A DNA stretch of 64,000 bases from Oculina patagonica (Eukaryota), in assembly GCF_052425735.1 (NCBI RefSeq), contig NC_135759.1, positions 41,664,001-41,728,000 of the forward strand, in the 5' to 3' direction. The number at the start of each line of letters is the position of its first letter. Positions within the stretch are counted from its first letter, which is position 1. Shown here piece by piece: positions 1-32,900 of this stretch. The position numbers and the translations under genes were made by a program. Below the pieces are notes generated by a model that saw only the letters and a list, made by a program, of their open reading frames with translations, was not told where the DNA came from and did not search any database.

Positions 1-95
1 AATCAGGAGTCTGCCCAGAACGCAGCCCACGATCTCCAAGATACTTTAGAAAAATAAGTAAAAAATGTTGGCTACTAAATTGAACACCCACCCAC

Positions 96-3000
96 CTCTT
101 GAAGACCTTCTTCCTCGTCTACCTCTGCCGCCGCGGCCAGCCGCTGCGCCCGTAGTATCAAAAGGTTTGTCCACTCCAGGCACAGCTCTTTTCTCAGGAG
201 CCTCCTCTTCGACCTTTTCCTCTTCCCGGCGTTTGAGACATGCTGCTTTTGGGTTAAGGTTTCGTTCTACGACGAGCCAAGAAAATGGTGTTAGTTAGGT
301 AAACACTGAGGTGAAATAAAGGTGATGATGTGATGTGAGGTAGAAAGACAGAGAGATAATACTCGTAAGGGAAAAGTAGTTCAAAATCACAGGGTCAGCC
401 TTCATTTCACGGAACTGGCAAACTGTCCAGTTTAAACAACCCCCAAGGAACTGGTAACGCAAAGCCAGGCTTACCTCGCACTTGTGATTCTAAACTTGTG
501 ATAACTGATACTGCTTGGTGAAGGATGACAAGCTGTGGAACAAAGAAACGACTTTAAGACAAACAGTTGAAAACTAAAGATGACAAGTAAATATAAGTCC
601 ACCGTGAGAGGTTATTACCAACAGCACTCATAAATGTTATATGTAAAACAAGGTCAAAACGCAGGCACGAATAGGACGTGGACAACAATACCTTGGTGGT
701 ATAATTTATAACGAAAACAGTCTTATAAAATCAGCACAAGGCTAAAAAAAGATTTTGGAAAGGAATGATGAATAAGAGAATAGTCTGACTCTGAAGCAAT
801 GGATTACTCCAAATCTGGTAATCTGAAATTGATTGAACAGAAATAATGCCAGCCACACTTATTAAATAACTGAACGGTAGCTACCTCTACAAATGGAAAA
901 AGAGAACTCAACTTAGACCTGATGTTGTTTTCTGTTTTGTTACCTTCGTTGTTACCTTGGTTTGGGGTTTGTCACTCTCTAAATGCAATTGACACATTCG
1001 ACCCAATTCTTTGAAGGCGCCGTTGATGTCTCGAACTCTCATCCTGTAATAAAGAGTTACGATTATTTGAGTTGTAGGTAGCTTAGTGCCTCACCTTAGT
1101 CTGTTTAGAATTAGAGTTGGATTTGTCACCCAGTAAATGCATCATACACATTCTTCCCAATTCTTTGAAGGCTCCATTTATGTCTCGAACTCTCAACCTG
1201 CAAGGTGCAGAGCACAAATTTGTACTGTTGAATATCAAATCAGGGCTTTTTTTCTTTCTTTTGCAGGGCCTCTGGAAAAATCAAATTACCTTGAGCCTTT
1301 TTAATGGTCGATTAAAGGTTAAACGTTCCTTCTGAATGCTTTAACTATTTTTGTATTAGAGATAACCTTCCTTACCTTATCCTCATCGGGCCCATGAGGA
1401 CTCTTGAGGCCGGTGTATTAGAGACAATGGGCATTTAATTTCAAACTACACCACGGTAATCTCACCCCATTTAACCAACAAAGACGCCCCCACCCTCCCC
1501 CTTCTGCCACACCCAGACAAACAGAATGAACTCTGACATTGGATTACTCACACAAGACAAACGTTGTAACAGTTGGAAGGGCAAAAGAAGACCCAGCACC
1601 AGAAGGAATAAGCATGCAGCAAGCCAAACCACACAAAGACTACAGTCCTTAGTTTACTAAGATCAAGATCTCTGACTACATATTTTAAGCTTCTCACCTT
1701 TCCCTAGCATTATTTGCGTATCTTCTTTCTTGTTCTCTCACAACTCTGACTCTGCCAGTGCCATCGTCAATGCCATCATCCGTTAATTTATCATCATCGT
1801 CTTCTTCACCGTCCACAATTAAGTCCCTACTGTCCATTTCGTCTAGATCCCCGTTGCTCTTCATATCTTGTTTTGAGGATGAGTCTTTGCTGTTTTTAGG
1901 ACCATCACCCCCAGTGTCCATTTTAGAGCCATCTGCAAATTGAATACGAAAATGATTTTCAACAAAAGCCATGTTATAACACTATTCAAGCCGCAGTGGA
2001 CCAATGACCTGTGTGCATTACGTGCATAAACCAGAGGTAAAATCTTCGGGGCAGATTGTGAACATTGTCTTTGTGTTGTGTTCTTGCATAAGACACTTTA
2101 CTCTCACAGTGCCTCTCTCCACTCAAGTGTACAAATGGGTAACAGCAATTTGTTGGAGACAATCTGAGCTGGATGCAATGAGCTAGACACAAACTCGTTC
2201 CCAGGGTCTCTCTCCCACCACCAGAGCGAGAGAAGAGACAGACCCTAGGATCGAGATTAAACTAGAAACCATCGCCTTTAGAGGAAGTAGCCACACATCA
2301 CCCCATTTGCTCTACAAAAAGTAAAGTTACTAGATTTCAACTTTGCAGGGTCTGCTGGTCAACAACAGCAGTTGAAGTGAAACAACATCGGGTAGTACTA
2401 CACTTTCTTACAGTCTAACAACTGCCATTATTTGTCCAAAGAATGACCACCACACTTCCAGCCTACTTATCTAAAATGGTACTAGCCAGATAATTGATGT
2501 ATAGTGAAGAATGAATGAATAACTTTATTAATGCGTCGAGAATGTTTAGCTCATAACAACCTTAGCTCATAACAACCTTAAGTTGAGCAAGAAGATCAAG
2601 GTTGAAATGATAAGTGTACATACATCTTGACTCGCTGGTCTCGGAGTTACTTGGAGACATCTGTGAGCCTGCCCCTCTACTTGACAAGTTACTGGGAGAT
2701 GCCATTCCTGGGTCGTCTTCCATTCCACTATGTCCACCACTCTGAGATCACAAAACAAAAACTCAATCAATACAGCTCCATAAAATCACATCTCAAGCGA
2801 ATATTATGAGGGATGGGACTCTGCCTCGAGGAGTTCCAATCACGAGATGCCATCAACAAAAACTCAATCAATACAGATCCTTAAAAAACAACTCACATCT
2901 AAAGTGAATATTATGAGGGATGAGACTCTGACTCAGGGAATTCGAATGATGAGAGGCCATTGACAAAAGTGAAAAAACAATCAATACAATCCTTAAAAAA

Positions 3001-23800: not shown

Positions 23801-26580
23801 TGCTAAGCAAGAAAATCAATGGCACTCATTCACCCTGTAACAACCACACTGCACTCTGTTCACAAGTCACAAACTTAGATCCACGTTTTCCCCTTGTTGC
23901 CCTGTAAGTCAATCAATAAGCACCTTATCTCATCTCAGAGTTGTCTCTTGCTTCTTTTATGTACATGCCCAAAACTGCAAGTCAATTTTTCCAGATACTA
24001 GATTATCTTAATTCAAATTTTTTTAATGATAATTTTCTTTCTTTTTAAGGCGGAAAAAATGAATTGGATTGACAATAATTTGTTTTCACTGTATTTCATA
24101 CCAGTTTATGTAAATTTTGAAAATTCAAATGAAATTATGAAGTTATGAAAGCTGGTAAACCTGTATTTAACTAATGTCACTTTTGAGAGAACCAACTCAA
24201 TTCAAAGTATACACCAAGACACTTCTTGTTTAACTTTTCCAAGATCTTGATGCAGGTTATATCAAAATGCCAAAAGTGTAAATAGCCCATTTATTTTTCA
24301 AGGTGGATAGGAAGAAAAGGAAGAAAAAAGGAAGTTAGAAAAAGCTGCAAAACAACCAGTTAACACAATTACCACTTTTAAAAGAATACCATTTTTGAGG
24401 ATCTAAATATATGCACAGTTAATAAAGTAATATTTTCACCTGGCAAAACATCATCTGCTATGAAAATGGCAATAAAATGTGTGAAAACCTTTTTGATGTA
24501 ACGAGTAAATTTGCGTGGCCGGTGAACCAAGCGAACATGAATAAAGTGAAACTGTCTATAAAGTTAACAAGACACACTGAATTTATTCATTACATGAAGT
24601 CAACCATGTAATGTAGATGTGTTTGAAGCATGCGCTTGTGAACACCTGACGAACAGGAAGATCCATAAATTGCCCTTAATTTTACGGCAGGTATGTATCA
24701 ATGACTTAGTTTAGATGTTGGTCACAAAATTTAAGGTTTTACAGCCGTAAAACTCCCAGGGAGGGTGGGGCTAATGCCAGTAAGCATGTTCACTCGCATT
24801 ATCATATCTTCTATTTGACTTGAACAAAGGCTGAATGGAAACATTTTTCATGACATATAATAAAAATATGCTTTAATCGCTCATTTTAATAAGTCCTACA
24901 CTAAAGTTTGACTTGACGAGAAAACGACTAAAAACGGCGCAAACGTCTATCTAAACAAATTATTCCACCAGCTCAATACTTGAAGTGAACGAAAATAAAA
25001 TACGGTTATTTTATTTACCAAGCATGGCGCGTTAAAATATTAAAATTATCGCAAATTCGAGGGGGAGAATCTAAATCTCTAAAAAACTGTTTTGCGTTAA
25101 TTTCGCCACCGTCTAACCGTCTTAGATTCGTTAAAATCGATCAAGCGAAAAAGAATTTTCGTCTCGGAAAAAGATCTCGTCATGCATCGAAAACTATTAT
25201 AAACAAGGAAAAACAAACCGATCATTTTCTAAAAAAGAATCCATGCAAATTTGAGATTGCTTTCATGCTGTCTCGCCTTTCATGTCGATCAAAGGTTTTT
25301 TACGCATAATTTCAGGAGATTGTAAAAGTAACACGCGCCGATGTTTAGATCAGAAGAGGCCCGATCAAGCGAACAATATCAAGAAAGCAACGAGGTATGG
25401 CTGTGATGCCTGCGACAAAACAACAACAAAGCAAAGACAAGCAGAGCCTTATCTCCGAACCATTAAAGTGCCAAAGAATAATTTTACATTTAAATTCTCG
25501 CCAAAATGTCTTCTCAGTGTTAACAGATCTCTTACCTAAAGTTCCTAGAGAATTTGAACCGAGATACGAATTGGCAAAGCCGGATCCTTTGCGGGAAATA
25601 AAGTCGCTCTCGACATCGTCGATTGTGCTGTATACACCGTGACTATCTGTGTGATATCCCTGAAAAGAACAAAAAAGCGAATATAAAAATAAGTGAAATT
25701 AAAAGGCGATCGGTCATATGTAGTTATATTTATTCAGTCGTTCAGGTTTTGCTCAATGAAGTGTTAAAAATGCTGAGTTGCAAAGAAACATCATTCATCG
25801 GGCACGGCTTCGCTAACATACACGGCTATAAGAGCCACTTGTTAGTAAAATATTTTGCATCTTTATAAAGTAACAAATTATCGCTCAAAAATATAGAGTT
25901 TCCGTTTGGGCACGTGCGGCATTAGTGGTTCTAATTTTGAACAAATGTTCCTGTTGACATGTAAAGCGAGTTTTACGCGACTTTTGTTTTGAACATTTGT
26001 TTTAATTTCCAAGCGCATAAAACATGGCAAATTTAGCTGTATTCACAGCTTACCCGAGCTTCGTAGGCCGACACTGAACTGGCCTGCCACGTGGGTGTCT
26101 CATCCAAAGAACCTACAAAAGAAAAAATAAAACAGAGCCATCAAACTCAACATTTTTACGTCTTGGAAGCAGAGAAGCATATGCGATTGAATCAAGAACC
26201 GGTTCGAGGTACTCTAGTACGAGTAGCAGGTTCTATCAGCTCTATACAGCAAGTTTAATTCATGGCGAACGACAGACAAACAAAACGCAAAGGGCACCTG
26301 TTCGAGATGCGTGCATGGAACTCGATAACCCAGCTTCCGTCAGAGAGCCACTAGATTTACTGCCGACCATGGATCCCGGCGGCGAGAACATCTGAGCAAA
26401 AAAAAATTGCCAACACACAAAGCAAACACGATCGTTAATAAAGTGCAGACAACAGCGCTCGCTAATCGCAACATCAAGTGAAGTTGCGAATGCAAGTGTG
26501 TCAGAAATTTTCCAACTTATACTAACCGCGCTAAAGTCTAGTAGATCGCTCAGTTCCTTATCTCCCGTGTGCGGATTCAT
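96..26580 (-). CDS. TCF12: Class I bHLH E-protein (daughterless / TCF3-TCF4-TCF12 ortholog), multi-exon, 3' end unresolved at window edge
   Basis: Manually spliced GT-AG exons with consistent phases: 26580-26527, 26391-26298, 26112-26054, 25659-25536, 22838-22807, 21316-21259, 12281-12238, 10045-9940, 7581-7469, 5993-5840, 5629-5559, 5250-5151, 4656-4568, 4142-3918, 2741-2624, 1932-1698, [1197-1095 or 1043-956], 532-475, 266-96. Diagnostic motifs: AD1 [48 protein letters not shown]2 [15 protein letters not shown], b[70 protein letters not shown]. The symbol is nominal: invertebrates have a single co-ortholog of TCF3/4/12. Confidence 0.95.
956..1043 (-). CDS. E-protein alternative bHLH helix1-loop exon B (canonical loop)
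   Basis: ttattacAG acceptor, GTAACA donor, 88 nt, phase 2 to 0; encodes (R)[29 protein letters not shown]. Confidence 0.9.
1095..1197 (-). CDS. E-protein alternative bHLH helix1-loop exon A (long loop)
   Basis: ccttgcAG acceptor, GTGAGG donor, 103 nt, phase 2 to 0; encodes (R)[34 protein letters not shown]. Confidence 0.85.
1366..1413 (-). mobile_element. 5'-truncated RTE-like non-LTR retroposon 3' tip
   Basis: Minus-strand hairpin TCCTCAT..ATGAGGA followed by a TAAGG-type tail; flanked by a 14-bp near-perfect direct repeat (1352-1365 / 1414-1427). Confidence 0.45.
1990..2295 (+). mobile_element. Degenerate tRNA-derived SINE (Nin-domain-like) with a small nested inverted-repeat insert at about 2192-2258
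   Basis: TGTGTTGTGTTCTTG..AAGACACTTTACTCTCACAGTGCCTCTCTCCAC..GTGTACAAATGGGTA core; similar to the reverse complement of 44725-45045. Confidence 0.55.
2757..3075. repeat. Three imperfect tandem copies of a ~105-bp unit
   Basis: Repeated CAATCAATACA..CATCTCAAGCGAATATTATGAGG..ACTCTG..CCAATCA.GAGA.GCCAT. Confidence 0.75.
3205..3688. mobile_element. hAT-like MITE (CAGGGCTCGAGACTAAC TIR, 5-bp TSD CGTGG) nested in an older palindromic repeat
   Basis: Perfect 17-bp TIRs; CGTGG at 3200-3204 and 3689-3693; subterminal GGCTAGT/ACTAGCC motifs. Confidence 0.8.
4290..4546. mobile_element. PIF/Harbinger-like MITE (TGCACCTATCAATGTT TIR, TAA TSD)
   Basis: TIRs and TAA on both flanks; a second family member lies at 62423-62705. 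Confidence 0.75.
8298..8466. repeat. Long inverted repeat / fold-back
   Basis: Perfect 40-bp arms 8298-8337 / 8427-8466, plus an imperfect ~30-bp inner stem 8363-8427. Confidence 0.85.
11628..12197. mobile_element. Tc1/mariner-pogo-like MITE (TA-CAGTCAACTCTCTCT TIR)
   Basis: TIRs with TA duplication; repeated subterminal ACGGACACCTCT.TAAG motifs. Confidence 0.85.
15980..16961. mobile_element. Non-autonomous AcademH-type DNA transposon
   Basis: TAG..CTA termini, 104-bp TIRs with 1 mismatch, perfect 9-bp TSD CACTTTTGT (15971-15979 / 16962-16970). Confidence 0.88.
17568..18006. mobile_element. MITE with CAGAGATTCCAACCCT TIRs
   Basis: 16-bp terminal inverted repeats; TSD not evident. Confidence 0.6.
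20717..20889. mobile_element. Short Tc1/pogo-like MITE
   Basis: TACAGTTGAACCCC..GGAGTTCTACTGTA imperfect TIRs; a related end occurs at 61610. Confidence 0.65.
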
Positions 26581-29963: not shown

Positions 29964-32900
29964 CTGCCAGTCTATAATGTAAATGCTCATTCAATACGAA
30001 CATGAGATATAAAATAGTTAGTGAGGAAAAATGCCTGAACATCTAGCAGTCGGGCACAGCTGCTTTTGTCTCCAGTTGTCAGGATGACGTTGCTACAACC
30101 AGTTGCAAAATAGTTGAGACACTCCCCCCAAATTCAGACAACATTGCTGGGGGGAGGGGACAAAACTGTAAAGGGGAAGAGGGAGAACAGGAGATATCAT
30201 TGTTCAGATGTCTAAAATGACTTCTCCATCTAGAGTGCCTTAACTCTTTTTGAAAATGGTTGTAGCACACCGGTGATAATTTAAGGTTAATACTGGGAAC
30301 ATGATGGGACATGCTGGCAGACTGTGTGGTCCAGCCAAACTGTTTCATTCTCTGTATCAATTTACTTTTATCATTAAACGCTTAACGCTGAATTGTAAAT
30401 TAAGCTGTAAGGGTTTTATTCCTGTATGGTTAACGAAAAACAATAAAATAAACTGCATTTTGCGGTGCAAAAAGTGGTTGAGAAGTCTGTTTGTAAGGCT
30501 AAAATTAATGGCTAACAAGCCGGCGCCCGACACCCTTTTTCACCCTTTTTGAATGTGACGCTAGTCAATCGTAAGTAAACCCTCAGAATTTTTGTTTATT
30601 TTCTCAATCCGATATGCTGGTGTTCTACTGTACTCTCTGAGTTAAGTATTTTGCTTAACAATGCATCGCAAAATCCGCGGCCAGTGCTGAAACCCAAACA
30701 TCTCTAGTCTACCTCACTAACCAATACTGAATAGGCCACCGCGCCTCCAAGTAAAAGGAGGAACTGACTATGAAACTTGATGACTTCGCAAGGCTTTTCT
30801 TAGGAATTCAAGTGCAAGTTAAATACTGTTAAGTTAATGACCTTTCGTTACCTTCGGATCTAGCAGCCGTCTTTTATCATTACTTTCCGAGGGGTCGCTG
30901 CTTTAGCGTAAAAGCAAAAATGTTTTGAATAAAGCTGCGCGGAATTGAAGGAATCAGTTTTTTTTTCCATAGAGAAAAAGAATTTATATAACGGTATGAG
31001 AAGAAAGTAACATTAAAAATGACTTTTTACAAGGCTAAAAATTTGTTCAAAGACTTGTTTGAAGTTGACTAAAAACAAAATTTTAGCCTTGTAAATAGTT
31101 ATTTTAACCTAAAGAGAACATCATGGACAAAGTTACATCGCCTTTTGAATATCTCCATCAACAACAAGCATCACTGATCTGTTAAGTTGGTTAGAGTTTG
31201 CTGTGTGAAGTTTGAGATCGCTACATTCAGAGGATCGCCACTTTCGGGGTATTATATATAGGGGGGCCAAACGAAGATGAGAGTTGACTCTCATGAAAGT
31301 TTTCGCCAACTCCCATCGACTATCATCGACTCGGGCCAACAAAAGAAAATTTATATCTCAGGAAAAAATTTGAGCACGTTCAAAGTCGATGAGAGCGCAT
31401 GAGAGTTGGTGAGAGTGCATGAGATTGTGAAGCCAACCGAGAGAAATTTCAGCCGTCCCTTTGAGTTCTGATTGGCTATTAAAGAGAAAGACAATTTTCA
31501 GGAAACACAGTGCAGAATAAAGGAATGCAGTGCAAACAGGAGCCCAGCTACAACGAAGATTTCCGAATTTAGCCATGGATTGCGAAGATGGCCAGCAAAG
31601 TTCACACGAGACCCCCCCCCCCCTCCCCCCCTATTATCATCGTGGGATTTGAAAGACCTTGAAACTGTTTTGACGGCTTATATCCGAGGCTTACAAAAAC
31701 TGCTTTTTGACGGTAAAAATTGCCCTTTTTTGACGGTTAAATTGCGTGCCGTTTGACGGCTGACGGTTAATCTTATTGAGACACTCCCCTAATGCCTTTC
31801 TGAATGCCAAAGATCATTAGAAGGCTATTCGGAGATTTCCAAAGATCACCCGAAGATTTCCGAGGATCCCCCGAAGGCTTCCGAAGGTAACCCAAATTTT
31901 CGTTTCAAGCGAGTTCCCAGCTTTCAAACTTTCTTATTTCCCTATGTTTGTTTTGTTCTTTTCTTTATCTCCGCTAACTGTAAAATTGATTGTCTTCCAG
32001 GCCCCCGAGTATCTGGCCCTTTCCCCCTCAGATCGTTTTCCCTTTTCTCTGTCTTTCATATATTCTACAGAAATTTCTCCCTTTTTAGTCACCCATCAAG
32101 TAGAAATAGATAAACGAGAGCAAAAAAAAGACCGCCGGGTAGCAAGTGAAAACAAATCTTGACCACAGTTTGCTCTCCGGCGTCCCTTCTCATTCGACAT
32201 ATTCCTTGTTCTCGGCTTTTTAAACTTTTGCAAAACAACTTAGAAAATAAGAGGTAGAAAACAAATTTCGTATACCCTAATCGGTCCCAACACTTTAACG
32301 CCCATTATATTAGCAAGAGGGTTTGAGAAGTGGTATGGAATTCCGGCTGTACATTTTACAATCATCAAAAACATCTTAAATGTAAAAACTCGAAACTCTT
32401 TCCTCGTCTTTTCAACCTGATGAGGATCGTGGGACGACGGCTAAACAGATAATCTTACATACGTTAAAAGATACTAAAATGCCACAAAAATATAAACGAG
32501 TAAACTTACCTCAATCATTAAAAATCTTCATCGGTCTGTGGCTGACACAAACACTGCAAAAACACACTGCTATTGCACAGACTGCATTCTCTGGTCTTGG
32601 CTATCATCTCTTTTTCGTGCCATGTTTGGAGATTCGTCATCTCGCCTCCTTCAGAAAACACGTTTAGCTGAACCTTCATTCAACTTCAGGTTGATAAACA
32701 ACCAAATCCTATTTTACAGTCCCTTTAGTTTTAGTATCAGTATCAGCGAGTGTGAAATAAGCTAAAACTAGTCCTCACTGCTTTGAAATGCCCTCTTTCG
32801 CTCAACTCTTAGGAGTTCATTCACTGGAAACTCTGAACACTACTGAACGCCAAGGTAATCTTCTAAAATAGCTGTGAACTATTAAAATTCGGCTTTCCAT

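Follow-up and report, generated by a model that had tools for sequence, protein, structure and literature searches.

Tandem, alternatively used helix 1-loop exons in the E-protein gene of stony corals and a sea anemone

A 64,000-nucleotide (nt) stretch of the genome of the stony coral Oculina patagonica (contig NC_135759.1, positions 41,664,001 to 41,728,000; hereafter the window) contains, near its start, the end of a gene that specifies a basic helix-loop-helix (bHLH) domain. Within the sequences encoding this domain, two homologous exons, here called A and B, lie in tandem and give rise to two classes of protein isoform. The gene is that of the O. patagonica E-protein, a member of the class I bHLH family that comprises TCF3/4/12 and daughterless, and it is the only gene of this class in the stony coral. 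E-proteins serve as obligatory partners for those bHLH factors that are tissue-specific (proneural, myogenic, Twist and Hand proteins) and are targeted by Id/Emc inhibitors.

The gene runs on the minus strand from about position 26580 to beyond position 1 of the window. The part contained in the window (95 to 26580), as delimited by tblastn, 7-mer cover and Pfam, has about 17 coding exons and encodes the activation domains AD1 and AD2 and the bHLH. When isoform X1 of the RefSeq protein annotated in O. patagonica as "transcription factor 4-like" was used as the tblastn query, residues 1 to about 690 of the RefSeq isoforms were found to be encoded in the window with zero mismatches; in an exact 7-mer test the cover was complete but for intron-split codons and the 31 C-terminal residues. 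These final 31 amino acids are encoded beyond the window start and therefore the exon at 266-95 is not the last coding exon. A loose contig end at position 95, seen in all RNA runs, encodes the next residues of the protein. The AD1 motif (LSDLLDFS, of the LDFS type) is found in the exon at about 26580-26290 and the AD2, or loop-helix, motif in the exon at about 4142-3918, with further E-protein blocks in minus-strand open stretches upstream of the bHLH exons. The bHLH itself carries the E-protein signature RRxANNARER-xRVRDIN, followed by helix 2 and, downstream, by the characteristic 18-residue block. Both isoforms match the Pfam HLH model with 40-42 bits (cut-off 20.7), and the best PDB matches of the bHLH are E2-alpha and TCF4.

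Four exons on the minus strand make up the bHLH region, all bounded by AG acceptors and GT donors. A shared upstream exon (1698 to 1932), identical to the O. patagonica protein (100%), codes for an acidic stretch and for the basic region as far as ...RRYANNARE and ends in phase 2, so that its final AG forms an arginine codon with the first base of the next exon, be it A or B. Exon A (1095 to 1197; 103 nt, 34 amino acids) covers helix 1 and a loop of 12 residues, flanked by the end of the basic region on one side and the first residue of helix 2 on the other. It is separated by a 51-nt GT..AG intron (1044 to 1094) from exon B (956 to 1043; 88 nt, 29 amino acids), which has a 7-residue loop as in vertebrate E-proteins. 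Both exons go from phase 2 to phase 0 and end after ...QTK. They are followed by the shared helix-2 exon (475 to 532; phase 0 to 1, 19 residues) and by another shared exon (95 to 266), which continues into the last coding exon outside the window. Since A and B are each 3n+1 nt long, exactly one of them is needed to hold the frame: inclusion of both leads to a stop inside exon B, and skipping of both to a stop in the helix-2 exon. The two exons are 83% identical over 77 nt (E = 3e-18) and each is the only match of the other in the entire window; thus, their similarity is not due to chance. Over the first 21 codons they differ mainly at synonymous positions, with a proportion of synonymous differences (pS) of 0.47 against a proportion of nonsynonymous differences (pN) of 0.085. 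These observations bear out a first-pass annotation of the locus, made from the sequence alone, whose coordinates, phases, peptides and intact splice sites all held on re-reading, as did its statements that the helix-1 cores differ mostly at synonymous positions, that using both exons or neither shifts the frame and that the loop of A is five residues longer.

The use of the two exons in RNA was examined by mapping on positions 1-2100 the contigs assembled from four RNA runs, which came from four studies and bore three species labels. The joints of exon A with the shared upstream exon (1697/8 to 1195/7) and with the helix-2 exon (1095 to 532) were present in all four runs, with contig depths of 127-366. 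The joint between the upstream exon and exon B (1697/8 to 1042/3) was likewise found in four out of four runs (contig depth 69-782), and that between exon B and the helix-2 exon (956 to 532) in three of the four (209-782). The helix-2 exon was joined in turn to the next shared exon (266 to 475) in every run. No joint between A and B, nor between the upstream exon and the helix-2 exon, was seen in the contigs of the four runs, which drop rare forms. As a rough measure, the share of exon A in the isoform-specific contig depth was 0.72, 0.29, 0.28 and 0.32 for the four runs. Thus, A and B are an expressed exon pair, each joined to the same upstream and downstream exons, and both isoforms are abundant in mRNA. 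The junction check that the first-pass annotation had called for was therefore answered in favour of exon A, which is spliced to both flanking exons in all runs, with exon B used as well.

Two further features were apparent in these contigs. In run X1, where exon A is dominant, the contig carrying exon B (505-1042, minus strand) reads through the 423-nt intron to the helix-2 exon, and this retention yields a stop. In runs X5 and X6, exon B was also found extended by 12 nt (944 to 955) through an alternative donor; the extension is in frame, adds VTTK to the loop and is joined from 944 to 532 at depths of 193 and 133, as compared to 250 and 209 for the main donor. The donor at 944 is not conserved in two of the other coral loci described below (L001 and L002).

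The consequences of the exon swap for the protein were assessed by alignment to the E2-alpha structures 8ubk and 2ypa, with residues numbered as in human E47 (PMC8283981). The exchanged segment corresponds to E47 residues 557-585 and runs from the last three residues of the basic region through helix 1 and the loop to the first residue of helix 2. Both isoforms share the basic region up to ...ANNARER, helix 2 minus its first residue and all activation domains. At position 557 (Val in E47) the A form has Leu and the B form Met. The end of helix 1 reads CMMH in A and CQLH in B: position 574 is Met in A (Asp in Nematostella) and Gln in B, while position 575 (Met in E47), adjoining His576, is Met in A and Leu in B. 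In E47, Gln574 bonds Lys581 of the loop, and His576 bonds Glu600 of the partner chain (PMC8283981). The five additional residues of A were placed in the loop, which counts 12 residues, rich in Ser, Thr and Asn, in A as compared to 7 in B. Both versions retain the terminal Q-T-K of the loop, through which the loop is tied to both helices, together with every residue that the HLH fold is known to require.

A search with the 65-amino-acid open stretch around exon A, which returned only short genomic open reading frames, identified six loci from other corals (L001-L006), and every one that reaches far enough has A followed by B. At the nucleotide level, exon A is 97-99% identical to the window in these loci, exon B 91-97%, the helix-2 exon 84-93% and the upstream exon 72-87%. 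The mean pS among corals is 0.04 for exon A and 0.25 for exon B, rising to 0.45 in the helix-2 exon, 0.54 in the next exon and 0.62 at the end of the basic-region exon; two silent changes in A compare with nine in B (binomial p = 0.016). The ratio of nonsynonymous to synonymous substitution rates (dN/dS), which the first-pass annotation had proposed to compute for exon A, is uninformative among corals because dS itself is suppressed. Over the longer distance between corals and Nematostella, both exons show purifying selection (pN 0.15 and pS 0.65 for A; pN 0.05 and pS 0.75 for B). A three-species alignment showed that the constraint extends into the introns: about 55 nt upstream of the A acceptor and the entire A-B spacer are near-invariant, conservation being lost further upstream and ending immediately past the donor of exon B. 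Near-invariant intron flanks are a typical sign of a regulated alternative exon, and the end of the intron before exon A (1198 to 1255) is thus a candidate splicing-control sequence.

RNA structure was considered as the cause of the silent-site constraint in exon A, or as the exon selector, and was dropped: the predicted fold of the 940-1260 segment (minus strand) has a z of -1.2, like shuffled sequences, and there is too little variation to look for covariation. As the fold is no more stable than shuffles, signals bound by splicing proteins would be the likelier cause of the constraint. An Rfam scan of positions 1-3000 gave only sub-threshold chance matches. The intron before exon A also contains, at 1376-1414, a piece of about 38 nt with a small hairpin, CCTCATGGGCCCGATGAGG, to which RNA contigs map at very high depth; in all four runs, numerous unrelated contigs end at either side of it. 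This piece has the appearance of a short repeat shared by many transcripts. It occurs once in the window and has no Rfam match.

The exon pair is not specific to this coral, to judge from the other cnidarian loci. In Oculina, Acropora and Montipora, the automatically predicted RefSeq isoforms contain either A or B; in the isoforms retrieved from other corals, Pocillopora verrucosa is represented by both types, Orbicella by the A type, and P. damicornis and Stylophora by the B type, a set that spans both major coral clades. In the sea anemone Nematostella vectensis, the locus likewise has A (103 nt) followed by B (88 nt), with a spacer of 58 nt between them, and the RefSeq isoforms split into A-type and B-type classes (34 versus 29 residues). 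On the sequences compared, the presence of this 103/88-nt pair in Nematostella means that the duplication is no younger than the ancestor shared by sea anemones and stony corals. In a tree of the exons (29 usable columns, 19 of 29 forks open, only supported clades being used), the A exons of corals and Nematostella form one clade with support 90/87, and the five extra loop residues are common to them. The length of the A-B spacer has hardly changed across hexacorals (51, 53, 51, 52, 57 and 58 nt), whereas the flanking introns vary several-fold. In Actinia tenebrosa, on the other hand, only a B-type exon was found, with no exon A in the ungapped 2.1 kb preceding it. The octocoral Dendronephthya and the scyphozoan Rhopilema have a single exon bounded by the same introns.

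Comparison of these loci brought to light additional variation. Both A and B contain the motif DINGAF in all stony corals, and both exons have DINEAF in Nematostella (L007:19565-19813). The occurrence of the same Glu-to-Gly change in both paralogous exons of one lineage points to co-evolution or to an old gene conversion, as far as can be read from the sequences. Sea anemones have an optional cassette exon of 84-96 nt between the helix-1 exon(s) and the helix-2 exon (L007:20556-20639 in Nematostella, L009:35380-35475 in Actinia), which inserts 28-32 residues into the loop, ending again in PQTK. In Rhopilema esculentum, which has one helix-1 exon only, an alternative donor (+27 nt; L010:54420-54446) adds VSSVHPQTK to the loop. 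These variants and the 12-nt extension in the coral all use the same intron after ...QTK as exon A does; however, they extend the loop only, while A also alters helix 1 and replaces B. Variation affects the basic region as well. The corresponding exon of A. tenebrosa has two alternative ends (L009:31496-31543 and 31698-31730) lying 150 nt apart, the second of which, ...IKHRRFANNARE, is used by a RefSeq isoform, and some isoforms of R. esculentum include a 24-nt micro-exon repeating SANNARE(R) (L010:53408-53431). Finally, in a hydrozoan-like genomic open reading frame (P0031, Logan SRR25569770), the basic region is fused to helix 1 without an intron after ARER, and the end of helix 1 and the loop are then repeated in part, in tandem, as ...YQELDQMCSPHLKNESPQTK.

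HLH exon arrays are not confined to vertebrates and hexacorals. A profile-free search with exon A also brought up gene models with tandem HLH segments from several bilaterians. The oyster E-protein gene has three tandem exons encoding helix 1 together with the loop and helix 2; RefSeq isoforms use one each (P0142, P0272-P0275, P0299-P0313). Two tandem segments are present in models from a pearl oyster (Pinctada), a tubeworm (Lamellibrachia), two flatworms (Macrostomum and Taenia), a lobster (Homarus), a barnacle (Amphibalanus), an ostracod (Darwinula) and an amphipod (Hyalella) (models including P0150, P0022, P0277, P0149, P0156, P0018 and P0027). Exclusive use of the bilaterian copies was checked for the oysters only, through their RefSeq isoforms; the two-copy annelid, flatworm and crustacean models probably represent alternative exons merged by gene predictors. 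As in the coral pair, the spiralian and crustacean copies start directly after ...ANNARER. Unlike the coral exons, they encode helix 1 plus the loop plus helix 2 in one unit, without the intron in the loop. The spiralian copies, with "QPLTK", and the pancrustacean copies, with "IRIRDINEAL", each make up a separate clade of the exon tree (99/97 support in either case), and neither is linked to hexacoral A. The simplest reading of these relationships is that HLH exons of the E-protein gene were duplicated repeatedly and independently.

The arrangement recalls that of the vertebrate TCF3 gene, whose products E12 and E47 differ in DNA binding and dimerisation and whose exon choice is set by hnRNP H/F and PTBP1. 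E12 and E47 result from the mutually exclusive use of exons 18a and 18b of TCF3 (E2A), each of which carries the whole bHLH (PMC6795145, PMC6317319); in the merged vertebrate gene models P0016 and P0017, too, each copy spans the entire domain. Along with the bHLH, basic region included, the TCF3 exons carry residues upstream of it; over 1 kb separates them, and PTBP1 and hnRNP H1 bind to a distal silencer in the intron (PMC6795145). The two systems have in common the gene family, the tandem homologous exons within the bHLH, the shared activation domains, the difference in the dimerisation region and the fact that one form has Leu and the other Met immediately before the conserved His. They differ in that the coral exons swap only the equivalent of E47 residues 557-585, as the first-pass annotation had recognised in outline, in that the coral spacer is 51 nt long, in that the loop changes in length and in that the frame itself bars the use of both exons or of neither. 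A parallel for the short spacer is provided by exons 2 and 3 of alpha-tropomyosin, which are kept mutually exclusive by an intron that is too short. In the coral intron, a candidate branch point, TAAC, lies about 14 nt before the acceptor of B and about 37 nt from the donor of A, a similarly short distance from which we infer steric exclusion. Unlike in alpha-tropomyosin, frame incompatibility constitutes a second, independent safeguard.

The resemblance to TCF3 raises the question of common descent. If an ancestral metazoan pair of HLH exons had been inherited by vertebrate TCF3, spiralians, crustaceans and hexacorals alike, it must have been lost in octocorals, medusozoans and many bilaterians. 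The 5' boundary, a phase-2 intron after ...ANNARE, is indeed identical in the corals and in the spiralian and crustacean tandem copies, and the alternation of Met and Leu before the His has its parallel in E47 and E12. Yet the duplicated unit varies from the whole bHLH in vertebrates to helix 1 plus loop plus helix 2 in spiralians and crustaceans and to helix 1 and loop in hexacorals, the octocoral and the scyphozoan have single exons, and the extra copies of spiralians, pancrustaceans and hexacorals fall into separate, unlinked clades, albeit in a tree of 29 columns with weak resolution. In this same weakly resolved tree hexacoral A is linked to neither E12 nor E47, so that orthology with the vertebrate pair finds no backing. 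We therefore consider descent from one ancestral pair very unlikely, and an origin separate from that of E12/E47 the simpler reading. The first-pass annotation had proposed an independent origin; the single exons of octocoral and scyphozoan and the lack of a link between A and the bilaterian copies agree with it, but the tree is too short and too weak to amount to proof.

Two other explanations concern what exon A is for. It could be a decaying duplicate whose use is splicing noise, a view for which its absence from Actinia is the sole support. This is hardly credible, given that A makes up 28-72% of the isoform-specific contig depth in the four runs, that its frame and splice sites are intact in every scleractinian examined and in Nematostella and that it is the most conserved exon of the region. 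The RNA joints, the 97-99% identity, the Nematostella ortholog and the silent-site constraint together led us to discard the pseudo-exon, the outcome that would have undone the first-pass proposal. A subtler possibility is that the A and B proteins are interchangeable, the pair being kept for reasons at the RNA level (unproductive inclusion or skipping of both exons could, for example, serve to control dosage) or because expression has undergone neutral subfunctionalisation. Actinia gets by on B alone, both exons keep all residues known to be necessary for the HLH fold, and the strongest constraint on exon A is at the nucleotide level. But the protein differences have endured: the Ser/Thr/Asn-rich loop longer by five residues, the loss of the Gln corresponding to E47 Q574 and the Met before the His are kept in corals and Nematostella, over more than half a billion years, and exon A has a pN/pS of about 0.23 over the distance separating them. 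Interchangeability of the two proteins thus appears unlikely.

We favour the interpretation that a tandem duplication of the "helix 1 + loop" exon, in place by the time of the ancestor of anemones and stony corals, left the mutually exclusive exons A and B, and we give it a probability of roughly 0.8. In such a scheme, the donor of A would lie too close, at about 37 nt, to the branch point used for B for both to be engaged, and transcripts containing both exons or neither would, as a second line of defence, be removed by nonsense-mediated decay. Splicing regulators that choose the exon may bind to the frozen synonymous sites and to the conserved stretches of flanking intron. The changed contact between helix 1 and loop, along with the longer and possibly phosphorylatable loop of A, might alter dimer stability, partner preference or DNA affinity. 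By analogy with E12 and E47, the two isoforms are likely to differ in the stability or partner preference of the HLH dimer, or in its hold on DNA. Several points weigh against this interpretation. The assembled contigs lose rare forms, so that transcripts with both exons may have been missed, and the depth ratios are rough. In run X1 exon B occurs solely on a contig retaining the downstream intron. Actinia has apparently lost exon A, making isoform A dispensable in at least one sea anemone. No stable RNA structure was found around the exons that would account for the synonymous constraint. Lastly, we infer the difference in dimerisation or DNA binding, and presume the steric block in the 51-58-nt cnidarian intron.

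The full-text literature yielded no account of an invertebrate E-protein with alternative bHLH exons, nor any publication on the tandem HLH exons of spiralians and crustaceans, most subscription journals being outside the coverage of that search. The first-pass annotation had known of no description in cnidarians. No such paper came to light, although the RefSeq automatic annotation already lists A-type and B-type isoforms. The sequence fact is thus not new, since it is contained in these automatic predictions; what appears to be new is the recognition of the pair, its age, its pattern of conservation and its comparative context.

A broader proposition, which we advance tentatively and regard as somewhat less than an even bet, is that the sole E-protein of hexacorals has relied for over 500 million years on a switch between two HLH flavours that arose separately from E12/E47 and from the spiralian and pancrustacean arrays, with distinct partners or targets for isoform A and with a splicing code embedded in exon A that freezes its silent sites. 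The A/B pair is an old analogue of the vertebrate E12/E47 switch, working like it without belonging to it. Why vertebrates keep two versions of the E2A HLH is only partly understood, the presence of three paralogous genes being a complication; hexacorals have a single E-protein gene. Knockout of the Nematostella e-protein gene abolishes muscle formation, and the gene was treated as encoding one product (PMC10060217). Carrying the same A/B pair, this gene offers a direct system for addressing the purpose of a second HLH flavour. Exon A, with its near-frozen synonymous sites, provides a compact case for the study of splicing control in an early-branching animal. That such arrays recur in oysters, and probably also in further spiralians and in crustaceans, suggests a general pressure on the HLH domain. 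If this is true, animals would have repeatedly needed two versions of their universal bHLH partner.

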